Assembly: GCA_024704765.1 (NCBI GenBank) | Contig: JAKMXF010000255.1 | Coordinates: 62,001-126,000 of the forward strand | Direction of reading: 5' to 3' | From: Oopsacas minuta | Lineage: Eukaryota; Animalia; Porifera | DNA length: 64,000 nucleotides | Shown here: one piece after another, positions 28,665-63,251 of the stretch | Position numbering within the stretch: position 1 is the stretch's first letter | How the letters are laid out: every line of letters begins with the position of its first letter | Notes under the pieces: generated by a model | What the model was told of the DNA's origin: nothing | Databases searched by the model: none | The model's input: the letters and a program-made list of their open reading frames with translations, nothing else | Translations under genes and position numbers: made by a program

Positions 28665-28754
28665 TAATATTAGATTTCTTTTGTATAATATTATCGAGAC
28701 CAGATTTATAGAATTTATAGCATCTACACTTTTGCTGTACAATTAGTGCTGAAT

Positions 28755-29864
28755 ATGGCAAATACTCGAATAGTATCTCTTAAAGACTTTGAGGACTATG
28801 CTGCTAGAACTCTTCCAGTTAGTGAATGGGGGTATATTAATACAGGAGGTGGTGCTGGAGTTACACAGCTCAGAAATGAGAAATGTTTTAGAGAATACCT
28901 GATAAGACCCAGAGTTATGTATCCAGTAGGTATACCAGATCTTAGTACTAGTTTGCTGGGCCAGCAGGTATCTATGCCTATATGTGTTGGTCCTACTGCG
29001 TCTCACGGAATAGCGCATGAAAGCGGAGAAATAGGTACAGCTGGAGCTGCTTACAAATCTAAGACCGTATACTGTATGTCCAATATGTCAACAACTCCAA
29101 TACAAGATGTCTCTAAAGCTAACGCTTCAGGGATCAGATGGTTTCAATTGTACCAACTAGGTGCTACACAAACTGAACTAATAAAGCGGATTCGCGTGGT
29201 AGAGGATCACGGATACACAGCTATAGCTCTAACGGTAGATGTCCCTGTTTATGGAATTAGGTATGCAGATGAAAGGAATAATTTCTCACTACCTTCTCAC
29301 TTGGAATTAGCGTTCCACGTTGGTGGCAAGACAACTTTCAAGGGTGAGAAGGGGTCGGGACTTAGTGGGTTTACCACTGGAGGCAGTATCGGTTGGGATT
29401 TCCTTGATTGGCTTATTTCCATAACCAGGTTACCAATTGTGGTGAAAGGAATTTGTACACCAGAAGATGCTATACTTGCTGTTAAGCATGGAGCAAGTGC
29501 TGTATGGGTATCTAACCATGGAGGGAGACACTTGGACGCAGTACCAGGTTCTTTAGACCTCCTCTGTGACGTCATGAGGGGGTTGGAGAGGGTAGGCAGT
29601 AGAGTAGAAGTATATATGGACGGAGGAGTAAGGTATGGGACGGATGTCTTGAAGGCTCTTGCTCTTGGAGCGAGAGCTGTATTCATCGGGCAACCTGTGA
29701 TATGGGGACTCTGTTATAAGGGGGAAGAGGGAGTACATATGGTATTAGAATTATTAAGAGAAGAACTGAGATTAGCTATGATTCTAGCTGGCTGTAAGAA
29801 CGTACACGATATAGCTAAAGGACTAGTCGTACATAAATCAGAGTATTTGAACTCTAAACTTTAA
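28755..29864 (+). CDS. FMN-dependent (S)-2-hydroxy-acid oxidase, peroxisomal
   Basis: LPIVVKGI, VSNHGGRHLD (catalytic His), DGGVRYGTDVLKALALGA; C-terminal SKL (PTS1). HAO1 versus HAO2 not resolved. Confidence 0.93.
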   Translation: MANTRIVSLKDFEDYAARTLPVSEWGYINTGGGAGVTQLRNEKCFREYLIRPRVMYPVGIPDLSTSLLGQQVSMPICVGPTASHGIAHESGEIGTAGAAYKSKTVYCMSNMSTTPIQDVSKANASGIRWFQLYQLGATQTELIKRIRVVEDHGYTAIALTVDVPVYGIRYADERNNFSLPSHLELAFHVGGKTTFKGEKGSGLSGFTTGGSIGWDFLDWLISITRLPIVVKGICTPEDAILAVKHGASAVWVSNHGGRHLDAVPGSLDLLCDVMRGLERVGSRVEVYMDGGVRYGTDVLKALALGARAVFIGQPVIWGLCYKGEEGVHMVLELLREELRLAMILAGCKNVHDIAKGLVVHKSEYLNSKL

Positions 29865-29931
29865 GCTAATTTTGATTTACCTTTCATTAGAGTTCGTTTT
29901 GTTTTATTATTTTCTCTAGCAATTATTAGCA

Positions 29932-32900
29932 ATGTCAGATAATTCAGTTTCTGAAACAAAGAAACTTTTACGATCTCTTCTAATATCAGCAGAGCATGGA
30001 ATAGCTCTTAAAGATCTCACAAAAGATTTCTATGATACAGTGGGATACCAACTGCCTTACAAGTGAGTATATTGATACAGCAAACACCCGTTATATCGAA
30101 GCCTAAGGGATCGCAAAATTCTTTCGATATAACCGATTAAAAGTAGTCAATTGAGGGTTTGGGACCATATTTGTTGAGATAAGCAGGTACATTGATATAT
30201 CCGTGTACGATATAACGGTGTTGACAGTATATTATCTTATTGATATTATATACGAAATGATTCTATACATACAGAATGAATACTATACATTGAAAATAGA
30301 AGCATCAACCAGTTTAATAGATTTCACAACTTCACTGAACTGCTGTAATTCCCACTTCTCTGCCTCTTCTTTCTTACTGCTACTTCCCTCGCTTATTTTC
30401 ACAGGATCATTATACGTCACTACCACATCTGTATTATACTCTTGTAGCCTATACAACACTAGCTGTACACGAACGAGATTGCTTTGTTCTACTGTCTCAT
30501 TGAATTTAGCTATCTTCTGTGTACCGGTTAGATAATGACAAGCAATACATTTCTCCATAGTTATATTGCTAGTATCTACCACTTCATGACTTAGTATAGC
30601 TGTTTCTATAGAGTTATTAGCTTGTGATATATCCTGATAGTGTAATCTAGCTGCTTCGTGTCCACTCGCCACGTTCTGGTATTCTAACAGTTCTATAATT
30701 ATACTTTGATCTGTGTAAGGATGTGCAAACACCTCCTGATTATCTGGTACCTGTCTGAGCTCGCTAACGTCTACACGAGGTGTAGGTAAGGAACATATAA
30801 GAGCTCCTCCGTAGAGAGAGGCTGGAGTGGTCTTGATCTCATCTACGATCATATTTTCTGCCATTATAACGATAATCTTAGATAGATACAAAAATATTTA
30901 TATTTAGAATAATATGAGTTAGATAGTATAGATCCAAGGTAACCTGTATTTGACTGGTTTAACCAGTTCAATACTGCTCTAACCAGTTTATCCAACTCTA
31001 ACCGGTTTTGTAGTACTAAAATAGTAATACAATAATACACCGATAATATATTCGATTGAGATAACAGACAGTAATGTTGTTCCCAATTGCTTTGAGCTAA
31101 AATACAATTACAAATAATAGTACCGATTTAACTACAGCTCCTATAAACTATTATTGGTGCGATAATCTCAATTATTTTAGGATTACGACTCACGCATATT
31201 TTCATTTTTAACAAAACTTTCAAATTAATTATTCTAGGAGATTGGGGTATGCTAGTGTGGAGGGTATGCTGTGTGACATTCCAGATACCGTAAGGGTATC
31301 TAGAGACTGTGCAGGGCAGATTCGTCTGTTTGGAGTAGCCAATCAAGACACAGCTCATATAGCTGATATGGTAAAGAAGCAGAAGAAGGGAAGCTTCAAT
31401 CCTTACAAACCTCCACCAAAAGTAAGTGTGGCAATTATTTGATACAGATTAAGTTATCTTATATATTATCCTAACACAGACACAAGGTGTACAACAAACA
31501 CAGAGAGGGAGGAGAGGAGGAATGAAGCCACACTTAAACAGTCGTTACAACAATAATTTTAGTACCCCACGTCCTACTAGATTCTCATCTCAATACACCA
31601 GGTCACAAACTCTCCCTCCCAGCAACAAATTTGAGTTTGACACTTTCTCTACTAGTTCATACTCCAATAACAGATGCCAACAGGTTCCAAATAACAGCAG
31701 GGGTGCTTATCACACTTATCGAACTCCCCCAAATCACTATCACTCTTCACCCCAACATATGCCACACTCTAACCCCCCATTCAATCCATCTTACAATAAC
31801 TATACAGCACAAGGTTATCACAATACACAAGCTTATCACAATACTCAATCATATGACTACCAAGACAGATCTCCGAAATATTCAGCCACCTTCAATAACG
31901 ATTATAGAGAAATTAATAGTTCTTTACTAGGTCCTGATGCGCTATCTCCTAACAGGAATTCTCATAAACTGCACGGCATTAAAGATGCTATATATGATCT
32001 GTTGTATGGTCAACCAGATGGTATCCCTGGTTCCAATTTTGAAAACGAGTATTATAGAGTTTTTAGATCGAAGCTACCTTACTGCTCCCTGGGTTACCCT
32101 AACGCTAAACAGTTTATTGAGTCTATACCAGATGTAGTGAGAATAGAGAATGTTGACGGTAAATCTATATGTTATCTAGCTACTAGAGTTAACAAACAAG
32201 TTGTTAGGAAGGAAAGTGAATCAGAAAGTGAATGGCCTGATACAATAAGCTTTACTACAGAATCACTTCTATCACCAATAGAAAACACAGCCAATAATAA
32301 GTCTATTATTAAGCCGCAAGAAAATAATGGAATAACAGAAGATAAGATAAATAATGAAGTTGAAATATTTCTCAGAGAAGATGAGAAGAAGCGACATATG
32401 AACGAATTAAAGTCAAAAATTTGTGTATTTCTATTGAATAAGGATGCACCAGTACCAGTAGATGAGTTAGAGGATCAGTATAGAGCTCTGAATCGAGAAG
32501 ATCCTGAGATTCCATACCGTATCTTGGGATATTCCTCTATTAAGGAATTCTTACGAGACATAATGGATGTTGTAATACTAGTCACTAATAATAAGGATGG
32601 CAGTATGTCTGTAGTTCTAAAAACACATAATACTAGTCCTCCATCTCCTAAAGTACATCCCCGTCCTCCTATACATATTAATAATCAGCCTTTTCGATCT
32701 CGTATGCCAAATCATCAAATGTTACGACCATTTCCTGCTCCTCCCATTCACCCTAATTTCAGACCTCCGTTTGAACACCATAGATTCATACCTCCAGTCC
32801 CCCCTATGCATCACATACACCCTCAGAGACTTCCCCCTCCTAATCAGCACCCACACTTACGTTACCCTCTCCCTCCTCCTCCTCCTCCTCACATAATCCC

Positions 32901-34454
32901 TGGGTATCACTTCGTGCCCCATATGTCTATGCCACCTAACCATCATGAACCTCCAGGCTTTGAGAGTAGTTTCTCTCCTCCCTTACACCCCGCTATCGGT
33001 AGTGTCATATCTCCAACAGAAGCACTCAATGAATTTCCTGCTATCTCACTTGATGATGCTCCAGTCAATAAGCCATTTCCAGATAAGCCCTTTACTACCA
33101 GGATAAACACGCTCTGTATGGACTTCAGTAAAGCTCAAAAAGAGTTTGTACAAACTCAAATATTGAGTATAACTGATGTTAGAAAAGAGATTAAACTTAG
33201 AGTAACCTGCGAGATAGCTCTGAGGTATTTGGAGGGAAGTAATGTTGCTGTCCTGGCAGGAGAAAATCAAGGGAAATGTGCTTGTATGTCAGTTGCTCTC
33301 ACAAATGGTCTCAACATGTTAACAGATAACGTACAGAGTTTAATTATATGTAATGACGTCAGTGGGGTGGATAAGATATTTGAATGTATGAAGATTATAT
33401 GTGACAATACAGGGCTGAAGGTTACTCCATACCAAACAGCTGATAAGTTAAGATCCTTCCATGCAGGTTCCCAAATTATTGTTCTAGAATATTCTCTATT
33501 GGAAATGTTGCTAAAAAAGTGTGATATTTCGCAGCTGACAAGAATCGGTGTTTACAATGTTGCAACAGAGCCTAACACTTTTAATGAGTTGATTAAAACA
33601 TTGAAACGTATCCAAAGTGTGAAATTACAGGAAGAATTTAAATACTTCATCGCTACAAATCCTCATAATGAAGTAGGTAGCTACATACTAAAGATGGTTA
33701 ATACTCTAATGAATTCGAAATGCTATTTCACATATTACGGTAGAGAGCAGGAGAATTGTCTTATACTTGTACCACACGAAGCTGAGAGTACACAGATACA
33801 TACAGATGCGAGAATGTTACTTCGTCCGTCGTTATTGGCTTGCATAAATAGAAAGAAACAAATCCCAAATCATTTTGATAAATATCTGATACCATTGAGA
33901 GCATCTTGTAATAATTTTACTATACTATCTCAACACATAGAAGAAGGGTTACTACAGCAATCTCTTGCTTTATTAACTATGATTAAAGTAGAGCCGTCTT
34001 CCCACCTTACACAAGTTGTGATCATTGTACCTAATGAACTACAGGCTAAGGATTTCTTGGAGTTATGTGGAGATATGGGACAGGGAGAGGGTATCAAGGT
34101 GTCTATGGTTAATAGCAAAACTACTAAAGAGGATATTCGTTACAGTCACATATGTATAGGATGGTAAGTTATTAATTACAGTCAACTCTTGTTTTTATCA
34201 ATTTTCAATTTCTCCCTAGGCCAAAAGAGATTGCATCATCTTCTAACAATTGTTTCGCAAAGATAACAATGGTAATAATATATCGAATTGACTTAGAACG
34301 AAAGATGAATCATTTGGCTGAACTATTTCAGAATTGTCAATCACCTCAAGTTGTAGTAGTAGGGTCTAGTTATACGCGAAATATCCTCAACTTCGAGTCG
34401 AAATATATGTCAGAACCTAGACATATAACATTTTTAGCAAGAGAGACATATTGA
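29932..34454 (+). CDS. Three LOTUS (OST-HTH) domains + Pro-rich linker + two degenerate DEAD-box (eIF4A-like RecA1) domains, ~1077 aa
   Basis: Exons 29932-30062, 31238-31421, 31480-34163 and 34220-34454 splice in phase. LOTUS1 KKLLRSLLISAEHGIALKDLTKDFYDTVGYQLPYKRLGYASVEGMLCDIPDTV; LOTUS2 ...KLPYCSLGYPNAKQFIESIPDVV; LOTUS3 ...EIPYRILGYSSIKEFLRDIMDVV. Confidence 0.85.
30078..30227. mobile_element. MITE family A copy
   Basis: TA|cagcaaacacccgttatatcgaagcctaagggatcg...cgatataacggtgttgacag|TA, in intron 1 of the LOTUS gene. Confidence 0.75.
30283..30864 (-). CDS. RANGRF: Ran guanine nucleotide release factor (Mog1), nested in intron 1 of the LOTUS gene
   Basis: LYGGALICSLP, DVSELRQVPDNQEVFAHPYTDQSIIIELLEYQ and LYRLQEYNTDVVVTYNDP are Mog1 motifs. 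Confidence 0.92.
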   Translation of the reverse strand: MAENMIVDEIKTTPASLYGGALICSLPTPRVDVSELRQVPDNQEVFAHPYTDQSIIIELLEYQNVASGHEAARLHYQDISQANNSIETAILSHEVVDTSNITMEKCIACHYLTGTQKIAKFNETVEQSNLVRVQLVLYRLQEYNTDVVVTYNDPVKISEGSSSKKEEAEKWELQQFSEVVKSIKLVDASIFNV

Positions 34455-35310: not shown

Positions 35311-38300
35311 TTAGTATTCACGATTTGGTTCAGAGATAATTATGTTCTTAGTATTGACTTCAAGTCCCTGATCATAACTAGGATCTGGGAATTGAGCATA
35401 CACTTCTTCTACTTCTGAGCCTATGGTGTTTACGGGAGAGAAGTGATTGTTTGGTTCTATCTCCATTGAAGTGTATTCAGTAGGTTTCTCTTGTGCCGTG
35501 CTGGGTAGTGTAGGTAAGGTAATAGAATCTTGTTCCTGTGCTGTAGTACTCACTGAATTAGGAGGTGATGTAGCAGGTCCTGACCAAGATATCTCAGGTG
35601 TTGATGACGTAGGGAGGGTGTTATAGGGTTCAGGGGTTAACTCTGTAGAGGGCTCGTCCATTTCAGGAGGACGCGTAAGTTTGAAGAGCTCTGAAACAGG
35701 GGGAGGTCTCCTGTGAGATTGGTCTTGTTGCTTAGCAACGCCTTTGGTATGCTCCATCCAACCTGAATCAACTGGTATCAATAGTTCAGTAAGGTTAGAC
35801 TCTGACTCCATTGTCATTTGGTCATCTAGAATCTGTTCTGCAAGGATAGCAAAGTCAGAGCCTGTATGATCATTTCCTCTGCCTGTCCGTCCGTCAGTCA
35901 TACGCTCATTGCTATCATCCTGGAATATATTGTGAGGGAGAGAAGCAGGGGAACCTATGCTATGGTGGAGATTAGAGTCACTATCTTGTTTCGTGGCCTT
36001 TTTAGGACTTCTCTTCCTGGGGGTAGATTGTCGTTTAGGGGTTGGAGTGTTTGCATTTGGCTTTGAACGTGTCCGTTTCTTTGAAGGTGTAGCATCTGGA
36101 TAAACCTCACCTAAAGTAATTTGATGTGTGTTAAAATTGTGGACAGTTGAATAGTATATTTATGATATAACGGGGTGTTAACTGTACTTATTGTTTACCT
36201 CTTCTTCCTGTGTCTTTCCTTCTAAACCTACTCTCAGGGCCACCTTCATTTGAGTCTCCTTCCACAAACATAACATCAACCTCTCTCATCACTCTAGAGG
36301 GTTCAATCTGTCCGATCAGACTGTGAGCCATATCACGGTGCTCTGTAGCTCCCATATCAAAACTGTTACCCTCATCTGGTGTATGGTAAGGTGTCTCATC
36401 CATGTAGGAGGAAGTCCCGGGGACCTCTTCAACCGCCTGGGTGATTACTTGTTCATACGTCACTGGAAAACCCAAAGTATCCTATAAACGATTATCAAGA
36501 TAAAGCACGTACGTATATTATTCGCAGCATAGATTAATTAGAACAGTGCTCACCCCGAATAAATTGTCATCACTATCTCCCCTAGTCAGCTCACTCTTTA
36601 CTCTAGAAGAATTCTTCCTACGATCATGTAGATACTCGTCCATGCTTCCATCTAGCGGCCCCATAACGTCTATCTGCTCACAGAGGCGCCTCAGACATCT
36701 AGGCATGTGTTTGTTGAGGTTAGATCTGTCAGCGAACGGATGGTTACAGACATTACACACGTAAGGCTTCTCTCCTTGAAGAATAAAGATGCAATTAACA
36801 TATTTACTTGAGTCAAAATCACATTACTTAATGTAGTTCATTACTCATTGCAATTGGGATACGGCCCATTTAAGAAGGAGCTACAACCCTGCAATGTATC
36901 ACTACAGTAAAACCTGCTGTCCAATGCGTGTCGGCTTATGCAGTTTCCACTGTACTGTATTTTCACTCAATTATCCCATTCACCCAGTGTATAATTGAGT
37001 TAAGTTTGCCATATTGTAATTGTACAAATACTCTAGATACTTACCTGTATGCTTTCTTCTATGTATCACCAGATTGAAGTTATGAGGGAATCCTTTCTTA
37101 CATATTTCACAGGTAAACGGTTTCTCTCCTGAGTGCACGCGTTTGTGTCGATTCAAATGTGAAGTCTGTTTGAATGCCATGTCGCATTCGTCGCATTTGA
37201 ATGGTTTTTCACCTAAAATAATACATTTCTTATAATAAACTGATTTGGTTTATCTTTTAAATTCTTGCATAAACTATCTTGCCCACGATCCTTAAAAGGA
37301 AATATAATATTTAATTAGCAACTTAATAACAGCTTAGGAATTTGATAAAACTTTTCAACTTATGGTGTAATATGACTCGATTGTGTGAAACCATAACTAG
37401 CCAATATGGAGTTACGTGTTAGTCACGAGGCTAATAATTGTTATATTTTATTATCCAAAAGTGAATGAATTCATTCAGAAGGTTGCATGTTATTGTTACA
37501 CAAAGGTATACGGATTCTTATCGCCGTATTTTGAGGTGTATGCCTTTATATGTGATAATAATATCGAGTATTTCCATACTTACCGGTGTGTACGCGAATA
37601 TGAGCAATAAGAACTGAGTTCGAATTGAAAGATTTCTGACAAATACCGCATGTAAATAATCTCTTTTGGCCTTCCTCTGTGTGTGACTTCATGTGTCTCT
37701 TGAGCTTCCCAACAGAGGAATATGTCTTTGAGCAGATATGACAAGCATGTAACCGTTTCATAATTCCTCCTTGATACGTTCTCATAGAGCGCTTCTTTAC
37801 TGGAGTAGAACCTGTCATTGAAATACCACTTGTGGCATCTATTGACATGTTAGTGTCATTAAAAATATCAGATTTAGCTAGAAAAGATAATGAGGGGTAA
37901 ATACAAATATTTGTAACCGAAATAGTTTATAAGATACTTACTCTCATCCTCTTTCGAAGAGACATCGTCATCAAATTCCTCTGACTTGAAGTCTGGCAGT
38001 TCTCCAATCCCTTCATCATCTGAGACATCATCAAAGTCATAAACGGACTGTGGAAATGAGAAACTATCTAAAGGGGTCTCCACTTCTCTCATGCTCGTCT
38101 CTACCTCCTCTCCTATCTCTGAGTTTAGAAGTAGCGGATCACAATTCACAAGATCAGTAGATTCCTCCAATTCTACTTTCGGTTTGATTCGTGTAACGCC
38201 AGTAACATCAGTACTTGTTTTCCCATCTGTCTTACGTCTATTCCTATACTTGTAGCTACTCGTGGGTCTGGCTCTGCCTTTCGGTCTCAGCTTCTTTCTG

Positions 38301-61047: not shown

Positions 61048-63251
61048 GCTAACAGACAATTCGTGACATAATTATTAGACAATGTAGATTACCTTTCTTC
61101 TGCGAATAACCAGTAGATAATACCGATACAATCACCAAACGAAATTTACCTACAATTTTATCTTAGAATTCCCGAAGAGAGAATGATTCATGTAATAATA
61201 TTAAAATTCAACATATTTACATCAATTACAGATATGCGCGGTTGCATAATCGAAACATTTTACAGTAATATTGTGTAATATCTAATAAATATTATAATTC
61301 GTGTAATGTTCTAATTAAATTACAATAAAGGTAGGTTTATTATTTAAATTTACATATTTGAAGTGGTTCTTGGTTCAAGTTATAATTACCAATCTACTAC
61401 ACAGCCGCACGACATATGCAAATATTATTTATTAAAAGCAAGAGGTTACACTAGCTTAAATTTGAATGAAGATAGGTTAAGACAACCTATCGAGGAGGTC
61501 CTTACAAATCTATGATATGCCTTATTTCTGATCAAAAATTTGTAATTCCAACGAATTGCAGGTTCAAGTGCTTGAATATTAATTAATAAAATGGGAGTTA
61601 CTGCATGTATTAGCTATCTTTTATTATTTCTATCTGGAGTATGTCACAAGAGTGGAGTAACTAAATTTAATAATTAAGTAATTATAAACCAAAAACACAC
61701 GTACGCATCTCGTAAGTAATTGTAAGTTGTAATATTAATTAAATTATAAAAAAGCTCTGGCATACACAATTTGGATAGCACCTGATAATAAAGAAACCAG
61801 AAACGCCCGTGAATTGAAATAAATATATATAATTCTTTACTTCTAACGAACACAATACTGTTCACATAATTATCTGGACAGATATACACTATCAAATAAG
61901 ATTATGTTACAAAATGGGCGGCTATAGGTAAGAGGTATATTAAACAAATATTTGATAATATTGAGATAATGAAAGACAACCCATTTGAATGTATTATAAT
62001 TTCTACAAATAATTCTATGAGGATTAACCTTAGGAATACAATAATATTCAAATTGTACATAAAAATACAAAAGAATCTCTCAATAATGATTTGAATTATC
62101 AGTCATACACTGTAACATAGTTTATTAGTGTAATTATTATTAGTACAGCTTAATACAGTAATTACCTTCGTAACGAACGATAATCCTTGAGCTTCGGAAG
62201 ATTAAATAAGGATTGTTTGTATTCATTTATCAGTTGTTAGTAACTTGGAATTATTACAGAGATTAATTGATGAGGAAGAAACATAGAAATTCCATCGCAA
62301 TAAACATATTGCAGATAACCAATATGAAGCTTTGTATTGTCTTCTAATTCTCAATACCAATGCAATGAAATAAGAGTTAAGCTAGTATCAATGTAGATAG
62401 AAAACTGAAGGAAAATGCCGAGAAATAATGGAATTAGAGAATTGGCTCAGAATATCGCTGTCCATTAACTAAATATTAAAATGCCAGATATTTCCTCAAG
62501 AGATCTTTGTTACTTAATTCCTCTGAGAATATTAGCTTAATGTTTCAGTGGAAAAGGCTTGTCAATAATATTTTATTTGTAATAAGTTAGATTAATATGA
62601 CAAATAGTATTAAAGTTATGAATAATAACATATTGATAGAAATCAACATGTCCTATTACGGTCATAAAATTATAATCAACCAAAAGGTAGAATTGCCCAA
62701 TTTTGAATTAAATTATATCGTGGGTAGCAATAGACAGTAGAGGAATGAGATTTTAGGCGAAAGTAGGCAAATGATAACTCTAATCTAATTATCATGAACA
62801 TTGAAGTTTATGCGAAACGTAATTGAATGTTTAATATCAAATTAATGATGATAAATAATTATTGATAAATACAAGTATGCCAGCAGCTGGGCTGGAGAAA
62901 TCGCCTAAAAATCACTAGTACTGAAATTCAGGCCACTTTAACCGCCGATTTAAATAATGGCTATGGAATTTGAGTATAGGAAGTTAATTAATGGTGCTTA
63001 ATATAACAGATATTATAAGAAATAGATGATACGTCCAGAGTTCAAATTCTGGATTTAGATCCTAGAAGGATTAGCTTTCATTGAATGAGGTTATAACTAG
63101 CTAGACCAAATACACCGTTGCAAATAGTAGGAAATTAGATCCCATCGATAGCATCGTGAATATTGAAATACAAGTTTAATAAAGTGAATATCAAAAAAAA
63201 ATGATACAAAAGATAATAAAATTATAAGATGATGAGAAAAATAATATTGTG

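Follow-up and report, generated by a model that had tools for sequence, protein, structure and literature searches.

What becomes of a protein when domains that engage a DEAD-box helicase are joined to degenerate copies of part of such a helicase, and what such a protein could do, are the questions raised by a gene of the glass sponge Oopsacas minuta (Hexactinellida). The gene lies at 29932-34454 on the forward strand of the window analysed here, a stretch of 64,000 nucleotides (nt) corresponding to positions 62,001 to 126,000 of contig JAKMXF010000255.1 (assembly GCA_024704765.1). Its product carries, in order, an extended LOTUS domain (eLOTUS), a disordered region, two minimal LOTUS domains, a Pro/His-rich linker and two tandem, diverged domains (units 1 and 2) of the kind that forms the first RecA-like lobe (RecA1) of DEAD-box helicases. 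Across animals, LOTUS proteins act as organisers of germ granules, and the eLOTUS is specialised in activating Vasa, a DEAD-box helicase; in this lineage the Vasa-activator domain was fused to two conserved but dead copies of the first lobe of a helicase. We lean towards the view that the protein is a non-enzymatic scaffold of ribonucleoprotein granules, of the Oskar/TDRD5/TDRD7 kind, that would recruit a helicase of the Vasa type.

The open reading frame (ORF) list of the window held an ORF of 881 amino acids (aa) at 31522-34167 and small flanking ORFs, and these were assembled into four exons, all on the forward strand and each bordered by GT..AG. Exon 1 (29932..30062) contains the start codon, encodes aa 1-44, with the N-terminal half of LOTUS1, and closes with a phase 2 donor, GTGAGT. 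Exon 2 (31238..31421) begins after an AG acceptor, encodes the C-terminal half of LOTUS1 together with its TAHIADMV extension and KKQKK basic tail, and is followed by the donor GTAAGT. Exon 3 (31480..34163) is an unbroken reading frame of 2684 nt that covers the first disordered region, LOTUS2, LOTUS3, the second, Pro/His-rich disordered region, unit 1 and most of unit 2, and exon 4 (34220..34454), entered through an AG acceptor, completes unit 2 and ends at a TGA stop with no domain after it. Together the exons sum to 3234 nt, or 1077 aa with one terminal stop, so that the phase-consistent gene of four exons and ~1077 aa proposed in a first-pass annotation, made from the sequence alone, was borne out. 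The public NCBI model, LOD99_3209 (P0001, 1024 aa), is equivalent to residues 54-1077 of this product; it begins at an internal Met of exon 2, and so leaves out exon 1 and the N-terminal half of the eLOTUS. The present model corrects it by restoring the first exon and, with it, half of the eLOTUS domain.

The region is covered by four public runs of one sample, three of them DNA-like and one (X4) RNA-like. All three splice joints are present in X4 contigs (30062>31238, 31421>31480 and 34163>34220), with shorter sides of 25, 45 and 66 nt, respectively. The joining of 29932-30062 to 31238, on which the proposed gene depended, is among them, and it coincides exactly with independently predicted canonical splice sites; X4 depth is ~680 on exon 1 and ~20 in intron 1 outside the MOG1 gene that is nested there. 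The last junction is also backed by a transcript of another hexactinellid, Vazella pourtalesii (P0008), which has the same end point as exon 4. The gene is expressed. That it might be a pseudogene, or two genes wrongly joined, is effectively excluded: apart from the public model differing at the 5' end nothing speaks for an artefact of this kind, and against it stand the splice joints in the transcript contigs and the placement of LOTUS2, LOTUS3, unit 1 and most of unit 2 within a single stop-free exon, which is intact in at least seven orthologous ORFs (P0002-P0007 included).

Three LOTUS domains had been predicted, and three were found, two of them directly and one by rebuilding. LOTUS2 (31978..32169, forward strand; E 7.6e-11, 42.2 bits) and LOTUS3 (32395..32601, forward strand; E 5.5e-6, 26.6 bits), both of the minimal type, pass the gathering cut-off of 23.8 bits of the Pfam family OST-HTH (PF12872), and LOTUS2 has PDB matches to TDRD5, TDRD7 and the Drosophila structure 8WXS. 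LOTUS1 is cut in two by intron 1 (30063-31237), the intron that bears MOG1 (Pfam Mog1, E 2.8e-42), as had been anticipated. Exon 1 matches positions 3-40 of the OST-HTH profile (E 0.005, and E 0.001-0.002 in two relatives) and exon 2 matches positions 43-67, the halves being colinear on the profile in three species. Compared with the human TDRD5 structure 3S93, exon 1 corresponds to residues 13-45, and aa 2-50 of exon 2 to residues 49-97 (E 2.4e-4), an alignment that includes the C-terminal extension noted earlier for this domain. Since these are adjoining stretches of TDRD5 (residues 13-97), the two exons together rebuild one contiguous, TDRD5-type eLOTUS. An alignment of the spliced LOTUS1 to LOTUS2 of the relatives also runs through the junction (E about 6e-6).

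What marks out an eLOTUS is a C-terminal extension (alpha-5) that comes behind the winged-helix core, carries a small hydrophobic residue and leads into a basic stretch (Jeske et al., PMC5458760; 10.64898/2026.03.28.715021). The extension is needed for binding the C-terminal domain of Vasa, and the alpha-5 position occupied by L228 in Oskar is Ile in TDRD5/7 (PMC5458760); according to a preprint, the basic stretch after the extension is required for stimulation of Vasa (10.64898/2026.03.28.715021). The sponge domain has each of these features: its extension HIADMVKKQKK aligns with GIASLVAKQRS of TDRD5, Ile stands at the L228 position of the alpha-5 helix, as in TDRD5/7, and the basic tail runs KKQKK and then RGRRGG. 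We therefore read LOTUS1 as an eLOTUS, predicted to bind and stimulate Vasa. The disordered region after the basic tail is rich in N, S, Y and Q, and the second one, between LOTUS3 and unit 1 (32611..33075, forward strand), contains 28% Pro and 12% His, is 37-45% identical to its orthologues and shows a strongly negative GC skew. When the LOTUS region was used in a word-based search, the protein's own family alone came back and no TDRD5/7 protein, a result that makes no statement on orthology to TDRD5/7.

The C-terminal half consists of unit 1 (33076..33777) and unit 2 (33778..34451, split by intron 3 at 34164-34219), both on the forward strand, and their proposed colinearity with the RecA1 domain of DEAD-box helicases stood up. 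The Pfam family DEAD (PF00270) matches unit 1 in four of six orthologues (E 0.005-0.06, positions about 10-119) and unit 2 with E 1.4e-3 in O. minuta and 3e-5 in Vazella (positions 32-164 of 167), matches that are sub-threshold but repeated. When a family profile was compared with PDB sequences, the N-terminal domain of DBP5 came up for unit 2 (E 5.8e-5) and that of DDX6/p54 for unit 1 (E 0.029), and each unit aligns end to end with the DEAD units of a nematode protein (P0009, described below). No match to Helicase_C (PF00271) was obtained for either unit at E up to 10, and in O. minuta as in the Vazella transcript the protein stops where unit 2 does, with no RecA2 domain following. Measured against a DEAD-box protein, then, RecA1 is present, and a RecA2 with motifs IV-VI and intact motifs I, II and III are missing. 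Profile-profile comparison of the two units gave no similarity (probability 0.3), which leaves a recent internal duplication unsupported; judging from their sequences, units 1 and 2 separated long ago. A match of exon 4 to ALGX (SGNH-hydrolase-like, E 0.001) was set aside as spurious, since its span runs into the motif III region of the DEAD alignment and Vazella shows no such match.

The catalytic motifs had all been described as eroded, and this holds in part. Motif I, canonically AxxGxGKT, reads AGENQGKC in unit 1 and has no P-loop in unit 2 (ILSQHIEEG); motif Ia (PTRELA) is represented by ICND and PNELQAKD, respectively; motif Ib (GTPG) is not recognisable in unit 1 and is IGWP in unit 2; motif II (DEAD) has become VYNV and YRID; and motif III (SAT) has become (F/I)AT and GSS. 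DEAD and SAT are thus gone from both units, but unit 1 keeps an invariant Walker A frame, A-x4-G-K-C. With Walker B (DEAD) and SAT lost and no RecA2 present, the units cannot work as a helicase, and on this record of motifs neither is able to hydrolyse ATP in the manner of a DEAD-box protein.

What the surviving frame in unit 1 might be for deserves separate consideration. The Ala, the Gly-Lys and the Cys are invariant in eight of eight family sequences (G66, K67 and C68 for the last three), and most of the invariant residues of unit 1 sit in the P-loop, motif II and motif III areas. Such a pattern would suit a nucleotide-binding but non-hydrolysing switch, in which the P-loop would bind ATP, ADP or another phosphate ligand and regulate assembly or interactions. 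In unit 1, however, the Walker A Thr is replaced by Cys and the acidic DEAD residues by Tyr-Asn, and there is no recognisable Q-motif glutamine; because of these losses canonical binding of Mg-ATP is doubtful, and we consider a switch unlikely, if still worth keeping in view. Four cysteines of unit 1 (in GKC, ICND, FECL and SKC) and two histidines were also seen to be invariant in all eight sequences.

Seven further family proteins were recovered, 47-56% identical to that of O. minuta: the Vazella transcript and six ORFs on long contigs of ENA assemblies. Identity to orthologues is 57-65% in LOTUS2 and LOTUS3, 57-59% in unit 1 and 63-76% in unit 2, against 25-46% in the linkers and disordered regions. 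Both units are as well conserved as the LOTUS domains, and lie well above the linkers, and have therefore been selected and maintained as folded, functional domains. The best conserved piece is exon 1, at 77-84% identity in L001 and L002, two of the loci behind these ORFs, where exon 4 reaches 57-69%.

The family appears to be narrowly distributed. When 1.84 billion representative proteins were searched exhaustively by profile, the C-terminal module retrieved only its own family and one outsider, the nematode protein P0009, which has a DEAD array without LOTUS; with a library of this size an E of 0.001 needs, by our own estimate, ~45 bits, and weak paralogues would escape the search. Within that reach, the expectation that the architecture is not one already catalogued in many taxa was supported, the combination of LOTUS with tandem pseudo-RecA1 domains having turned up in glass sponges only (Vazella pourtalesii being the named relative). 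The ESM Atlas gave DEAD-family look-alikes at lead-level scores only, and no cluster pairing OST-HTH with DEAD, and a literature search found, in the library that it covered, no paper linking Oopsacas with LOTUS. The available part of the founding OST-HTH paper mentions helicases only with regard to Vasa, and lists no helicase fusion there (PMC2848206).

How such a protein might act is best approached through the scaffold that we favour. Its eLOTUS and basic tail would recruit and activate a DEAD-box helicase of the Vasa/PL10 type via that helicase's RecA2 domain, while contacts to RNA and multivalency would come from the disordered regions and the minimal LOTUS domains. The first-pass annotation had also thought of a possible germline or piRNA role. 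The pair of pseudo-RecA1 domains would hold the adaptor position that is taken by Tudor domains in TDRD5/7, or by the dead, SGNH-hydrolase-like OSK domain in Oskar, and would offer conserved binding surfaces for protein or RNA. There is precedent for a LOTUS domain fused to a dead enzyme in the inactive SGNH hydrolase domain of Oskar, which is already described in the founding OST-HTH paper (PMC2848206).

Whether Tudor domains were replaced in this gene, as the first-pass annotation supposed, is a different matter. The space of the Tudor domains in TDRD5/7 is occupied by DEAD-like units in the sponge protein, and no Tudor family was found among the Pfam matches, taken to E 1 for exon 3 and to E 10 for the C-terminal units. 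Yet Tdrd5 and Tdrd7 have both been reported, among the genes of the germline multipotency set, from each of the four classes of sponges, O. minuta being one of the species sampled (Fierro-Constain et al. 2017, PMC5381599), and for this reason the gene is more likely an additional, lineage-specific paralogue than an orthologue whose Tudor domains were exchanged.

An alternative use of the pseudo-RecA1 domains is suggested by the geometry of the helicase itself. The eLOTUS binds the RecA2 domain only, with a preference for the helicase in its open state, and the face of unit 1 that would be turned toward a RecA2 domain is its most conserved part. It could be imagined, then, that the protein is a helicase decoy or a trans-complementing partner, in which a RecA2 captured by the eLOTUS packs with a pseudo-RecA1 instead of the RecA1 of its own enzyme, which is thereby locked or re-routed. 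Closure of RecA1 on RecA2 in real helicases is, however, bridged by ATP and RNA through the very motifs that are lost here, and we judge a decoy to be improbable. A related idea, that LOTUS1 grips the RecA2 of its client and a pseudo-RecA1 replaces or competes with the client's own RecA1, giving a hybrid helicase core without hydrolysis, by which RNA would be clamped or let go in granules, is a long shot; if true, it would be a previously unknown mode of DEAD-box protein regulation.

Several observations weigh against a scaffold built on two pseudo-RecA1 domains, or against parts of it, and most of them concern the fold. The first AlphaFold2 (AF2) model, of the 440-aa C-terminal half and made from the eight family sequences only, was poor (predicted local distance difference test, pLDDT, 45) and usable just for domain-level matches of unit 1; residues 20-225 of it matched DEAD-box RecA1 domains with a VIA-align Z of about 11 and a root-mean-square deviation (rmsd) of about 3.5 Å. 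A second AF2 model covered unit 1 and drew on an alignment that also included the P0009 units; its predicted template modelling (pTM) score was 0.65, and its top 50 Foldseek matches were mostly N-terminal domains of DEAD-box proteins, the best including Hera, eIF4A, p54, DDX20, CGH-1 and UAP56 at target-normalised template modelling (TM) scores of 0.6-0.69. This better model is biased to the DEAD fold by the canonical P0009 units in its alignment; the family-only model gave the same matches for unit 1. A MAFFT alignment of both units with the P0009 units spread each P0009 unit over both sponge units, and was discarded as AF2 input. For unit 2 the RecA1 assignment comes from sequence and the order of secondary-structure elements, the fold search being for unit 1. 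The expectation that both units would model as RecA-like folds was accordingly realised in part, with unit 1 modelling as a DEAD-box RecA1 domain, unit 2 placed by its sequence and the whole-half model being of low confidence. Two further points are of another kind. The joint between exons 1 and 2 is seen in one contig, and its shorter side of 25 nt falls below the 31 nt of the bridging rule of the tool; and the invariant G-K of unit 1, together with its old nucleotide cleft being its most conserved part, may mean that unit 1 binds a ligand and is not purely a scaffold.

The same models bear on the possibility that the C-terminal half is a divergent but active helicase core with both RecA1 and RecA2. 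Foldseek did match the two-unit model to whole superfamily 2 (SF2) helicase cores, but these matches have TM scores of 0.2-0.28 and rmsd values of 18-20 Å, and against an active core stand also the match of both units to PF00270 and not to Helicase_C, the lack of motifs IV, V and VI in the alignments and the absence of DEAD and SAT from both units. An active helicase can be regarded as effectively excluded.

The locus has a conserved organisation of its own. MOG1, the Ran guanine nucleotide release factor, lies at 30283..30864 on the reverse strand, within intron 1, and an opposite-strand MOG1 is likewise nested between the equivalents of exons 1 and 2 in two other sponge assemblies, at L001 (3811-4398) and L002 (3888-4466), although the protein identity of the host gene is only about 50%. 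At both loci the order is the exon 1 equivalent, opposite-strand MOG1, the exon 2 equivalent, the long exon and, downstream, the equivalent of the last exon. The neighbourhood is shared by L001 and L002, with Vps54, a WD40 gene and MOG1, and L002 also has a flavin mononucleotide (FMN)-dependent dehydrogenase. In the window a dehydrogenase of this type (hydroxyacid-oxidase type, Pfam E 5e-107) occupies 28746-29864 on the forward strand and ends only 68 nt short of the LOTUS start codon, a very compact spacing. Downstream of the LOTUS gene, a GC-richer stretch carries an ORF of 196 aa, rich in Ser, Thr, Pro and Glu, at 35311-35901 on the reverse strand, for which a Pfam scan gave no match.

Some minor features of the gene sequence were also recorded. 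Runs X2 and X3 differ from the window over 29761-32084 by eight single-base differences and one 1-nt deletion (at 31048), two of the former (31253 T>C and 31264 G>A) being inside exon 2; this is probably allelic or individual variation. An 18-nt tandem duplication at 31808-31843 encodes QGYHNT/QAYHNT in the N/S/Y/Q-rich disordered region between LOTUS1 and LOTUS2, and was all that a repeat search found. Short stretches of intron 1 (30086-30175) and intron 3 (34174-34193) match contigs of the DNA runs that derive from other places in the genome, and may represent a short dispersed repeat. Intron 1 also contains a small palindrome (gttatatcgaa...ttcgatataac).

Among known systems, TDRD5 and TDRD7 (Tejas and Tapas in Drosophila) are alike in having an N-terminal eLOTUS followed by two further LOTUS domains. 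The eLOTUS of human TDRD5 (3S93) is the best match of the sponge LOTUS1, extension included, and the sponge LOTUS2 aligns to LOTUS structures of TDRD5 and TDRD7. They differ in having Tudor domains where the sponge protein has two inactive DEAD domains of RecA1 type, and orthology with them is not established; if the sponge protein is a scaffold of their kind, the adaptor end of TDRD5/7-like scaffolds would be exchangeable. Oskar, the germ-plasm organiser that recruits Vasa (PMC5458760), shares with the sponge protein an eLOTUS joined by a disordered linker to a catalytically dead domain with an enzyme fold (PMC5458760, PMC2848206). Its dead domain is SGNH-hydrolase-like and not RecA-like, it has a single LOTUS domain, and its sequence kinship with the sponge protein is limited to LOTUS. 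The C. elegans proteins MIP-1/MIP-2 (EGGD) and LOTR-1 also combine LOTUS domains with long disordered regions, and are described as germ-granule hubs recruiting Vasa-like helicases (PMC8331183, PMC9200344). They differ in having no helicase-like domains, and LOTR-1 in having a Tudor domain.

On the helicase side, DBP5/DDX19, DDX6 and eIF4A share the RecA1 fold, with motif positions from Q to III colinear in both sponge units; the sponge protein differs from them in having no RecA2, in having lost DEAD and SAT twice, and in a P-loop that unit 2 has lost and unit 1 has in altered form. The nematode protein P0009 (Aphelenchoides fujianensis KAI6207237.1, hypothetical, 1859 aa, Ala-rich) has five to six tandem DEAD (RecA1) domains and no Helicase_C. 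Several of its units are degenerate, and, as in the sponge protein, they form a RecA1-only tandem array; it differs in having no LOTUS domain and in that some units keep GKT and DE, and it is about 15% identical to the sponge units. Its sequence shows that RecA1-only tandem arrays do exist outside the sponge family. Utp25 and MUT-15 retain a two-lobe core of RecA1 and RecA2. An inactive but complete core of that type was not found here, both sponge units mapping to RecA1 only. Utp25 of yeast (PMC9539457) and MUT-15 of C. elegans (10.64898/2026.09.04.749402) nevertheless resemble the sponge protein in having a helicase fold that has lost catalysis, and they serve as scaffolds in RNA-processing complexes; the sponge protein departs from them in its two units of RecA1 type, the lack of RecA2 and the fusion to LOTUS. 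It is probably a LOTUS-domain scaffold, a kind already known, in which the fusion to tandem pseudo-RecA1 domains is new. This fusion is a natural experiment on the co-evolution of helicase folds with the regulators of helicases, and the short list of pseudohelicases, on which Utp25 and MUT-15 represent the two-lobe form, gains a RecA1-only type.

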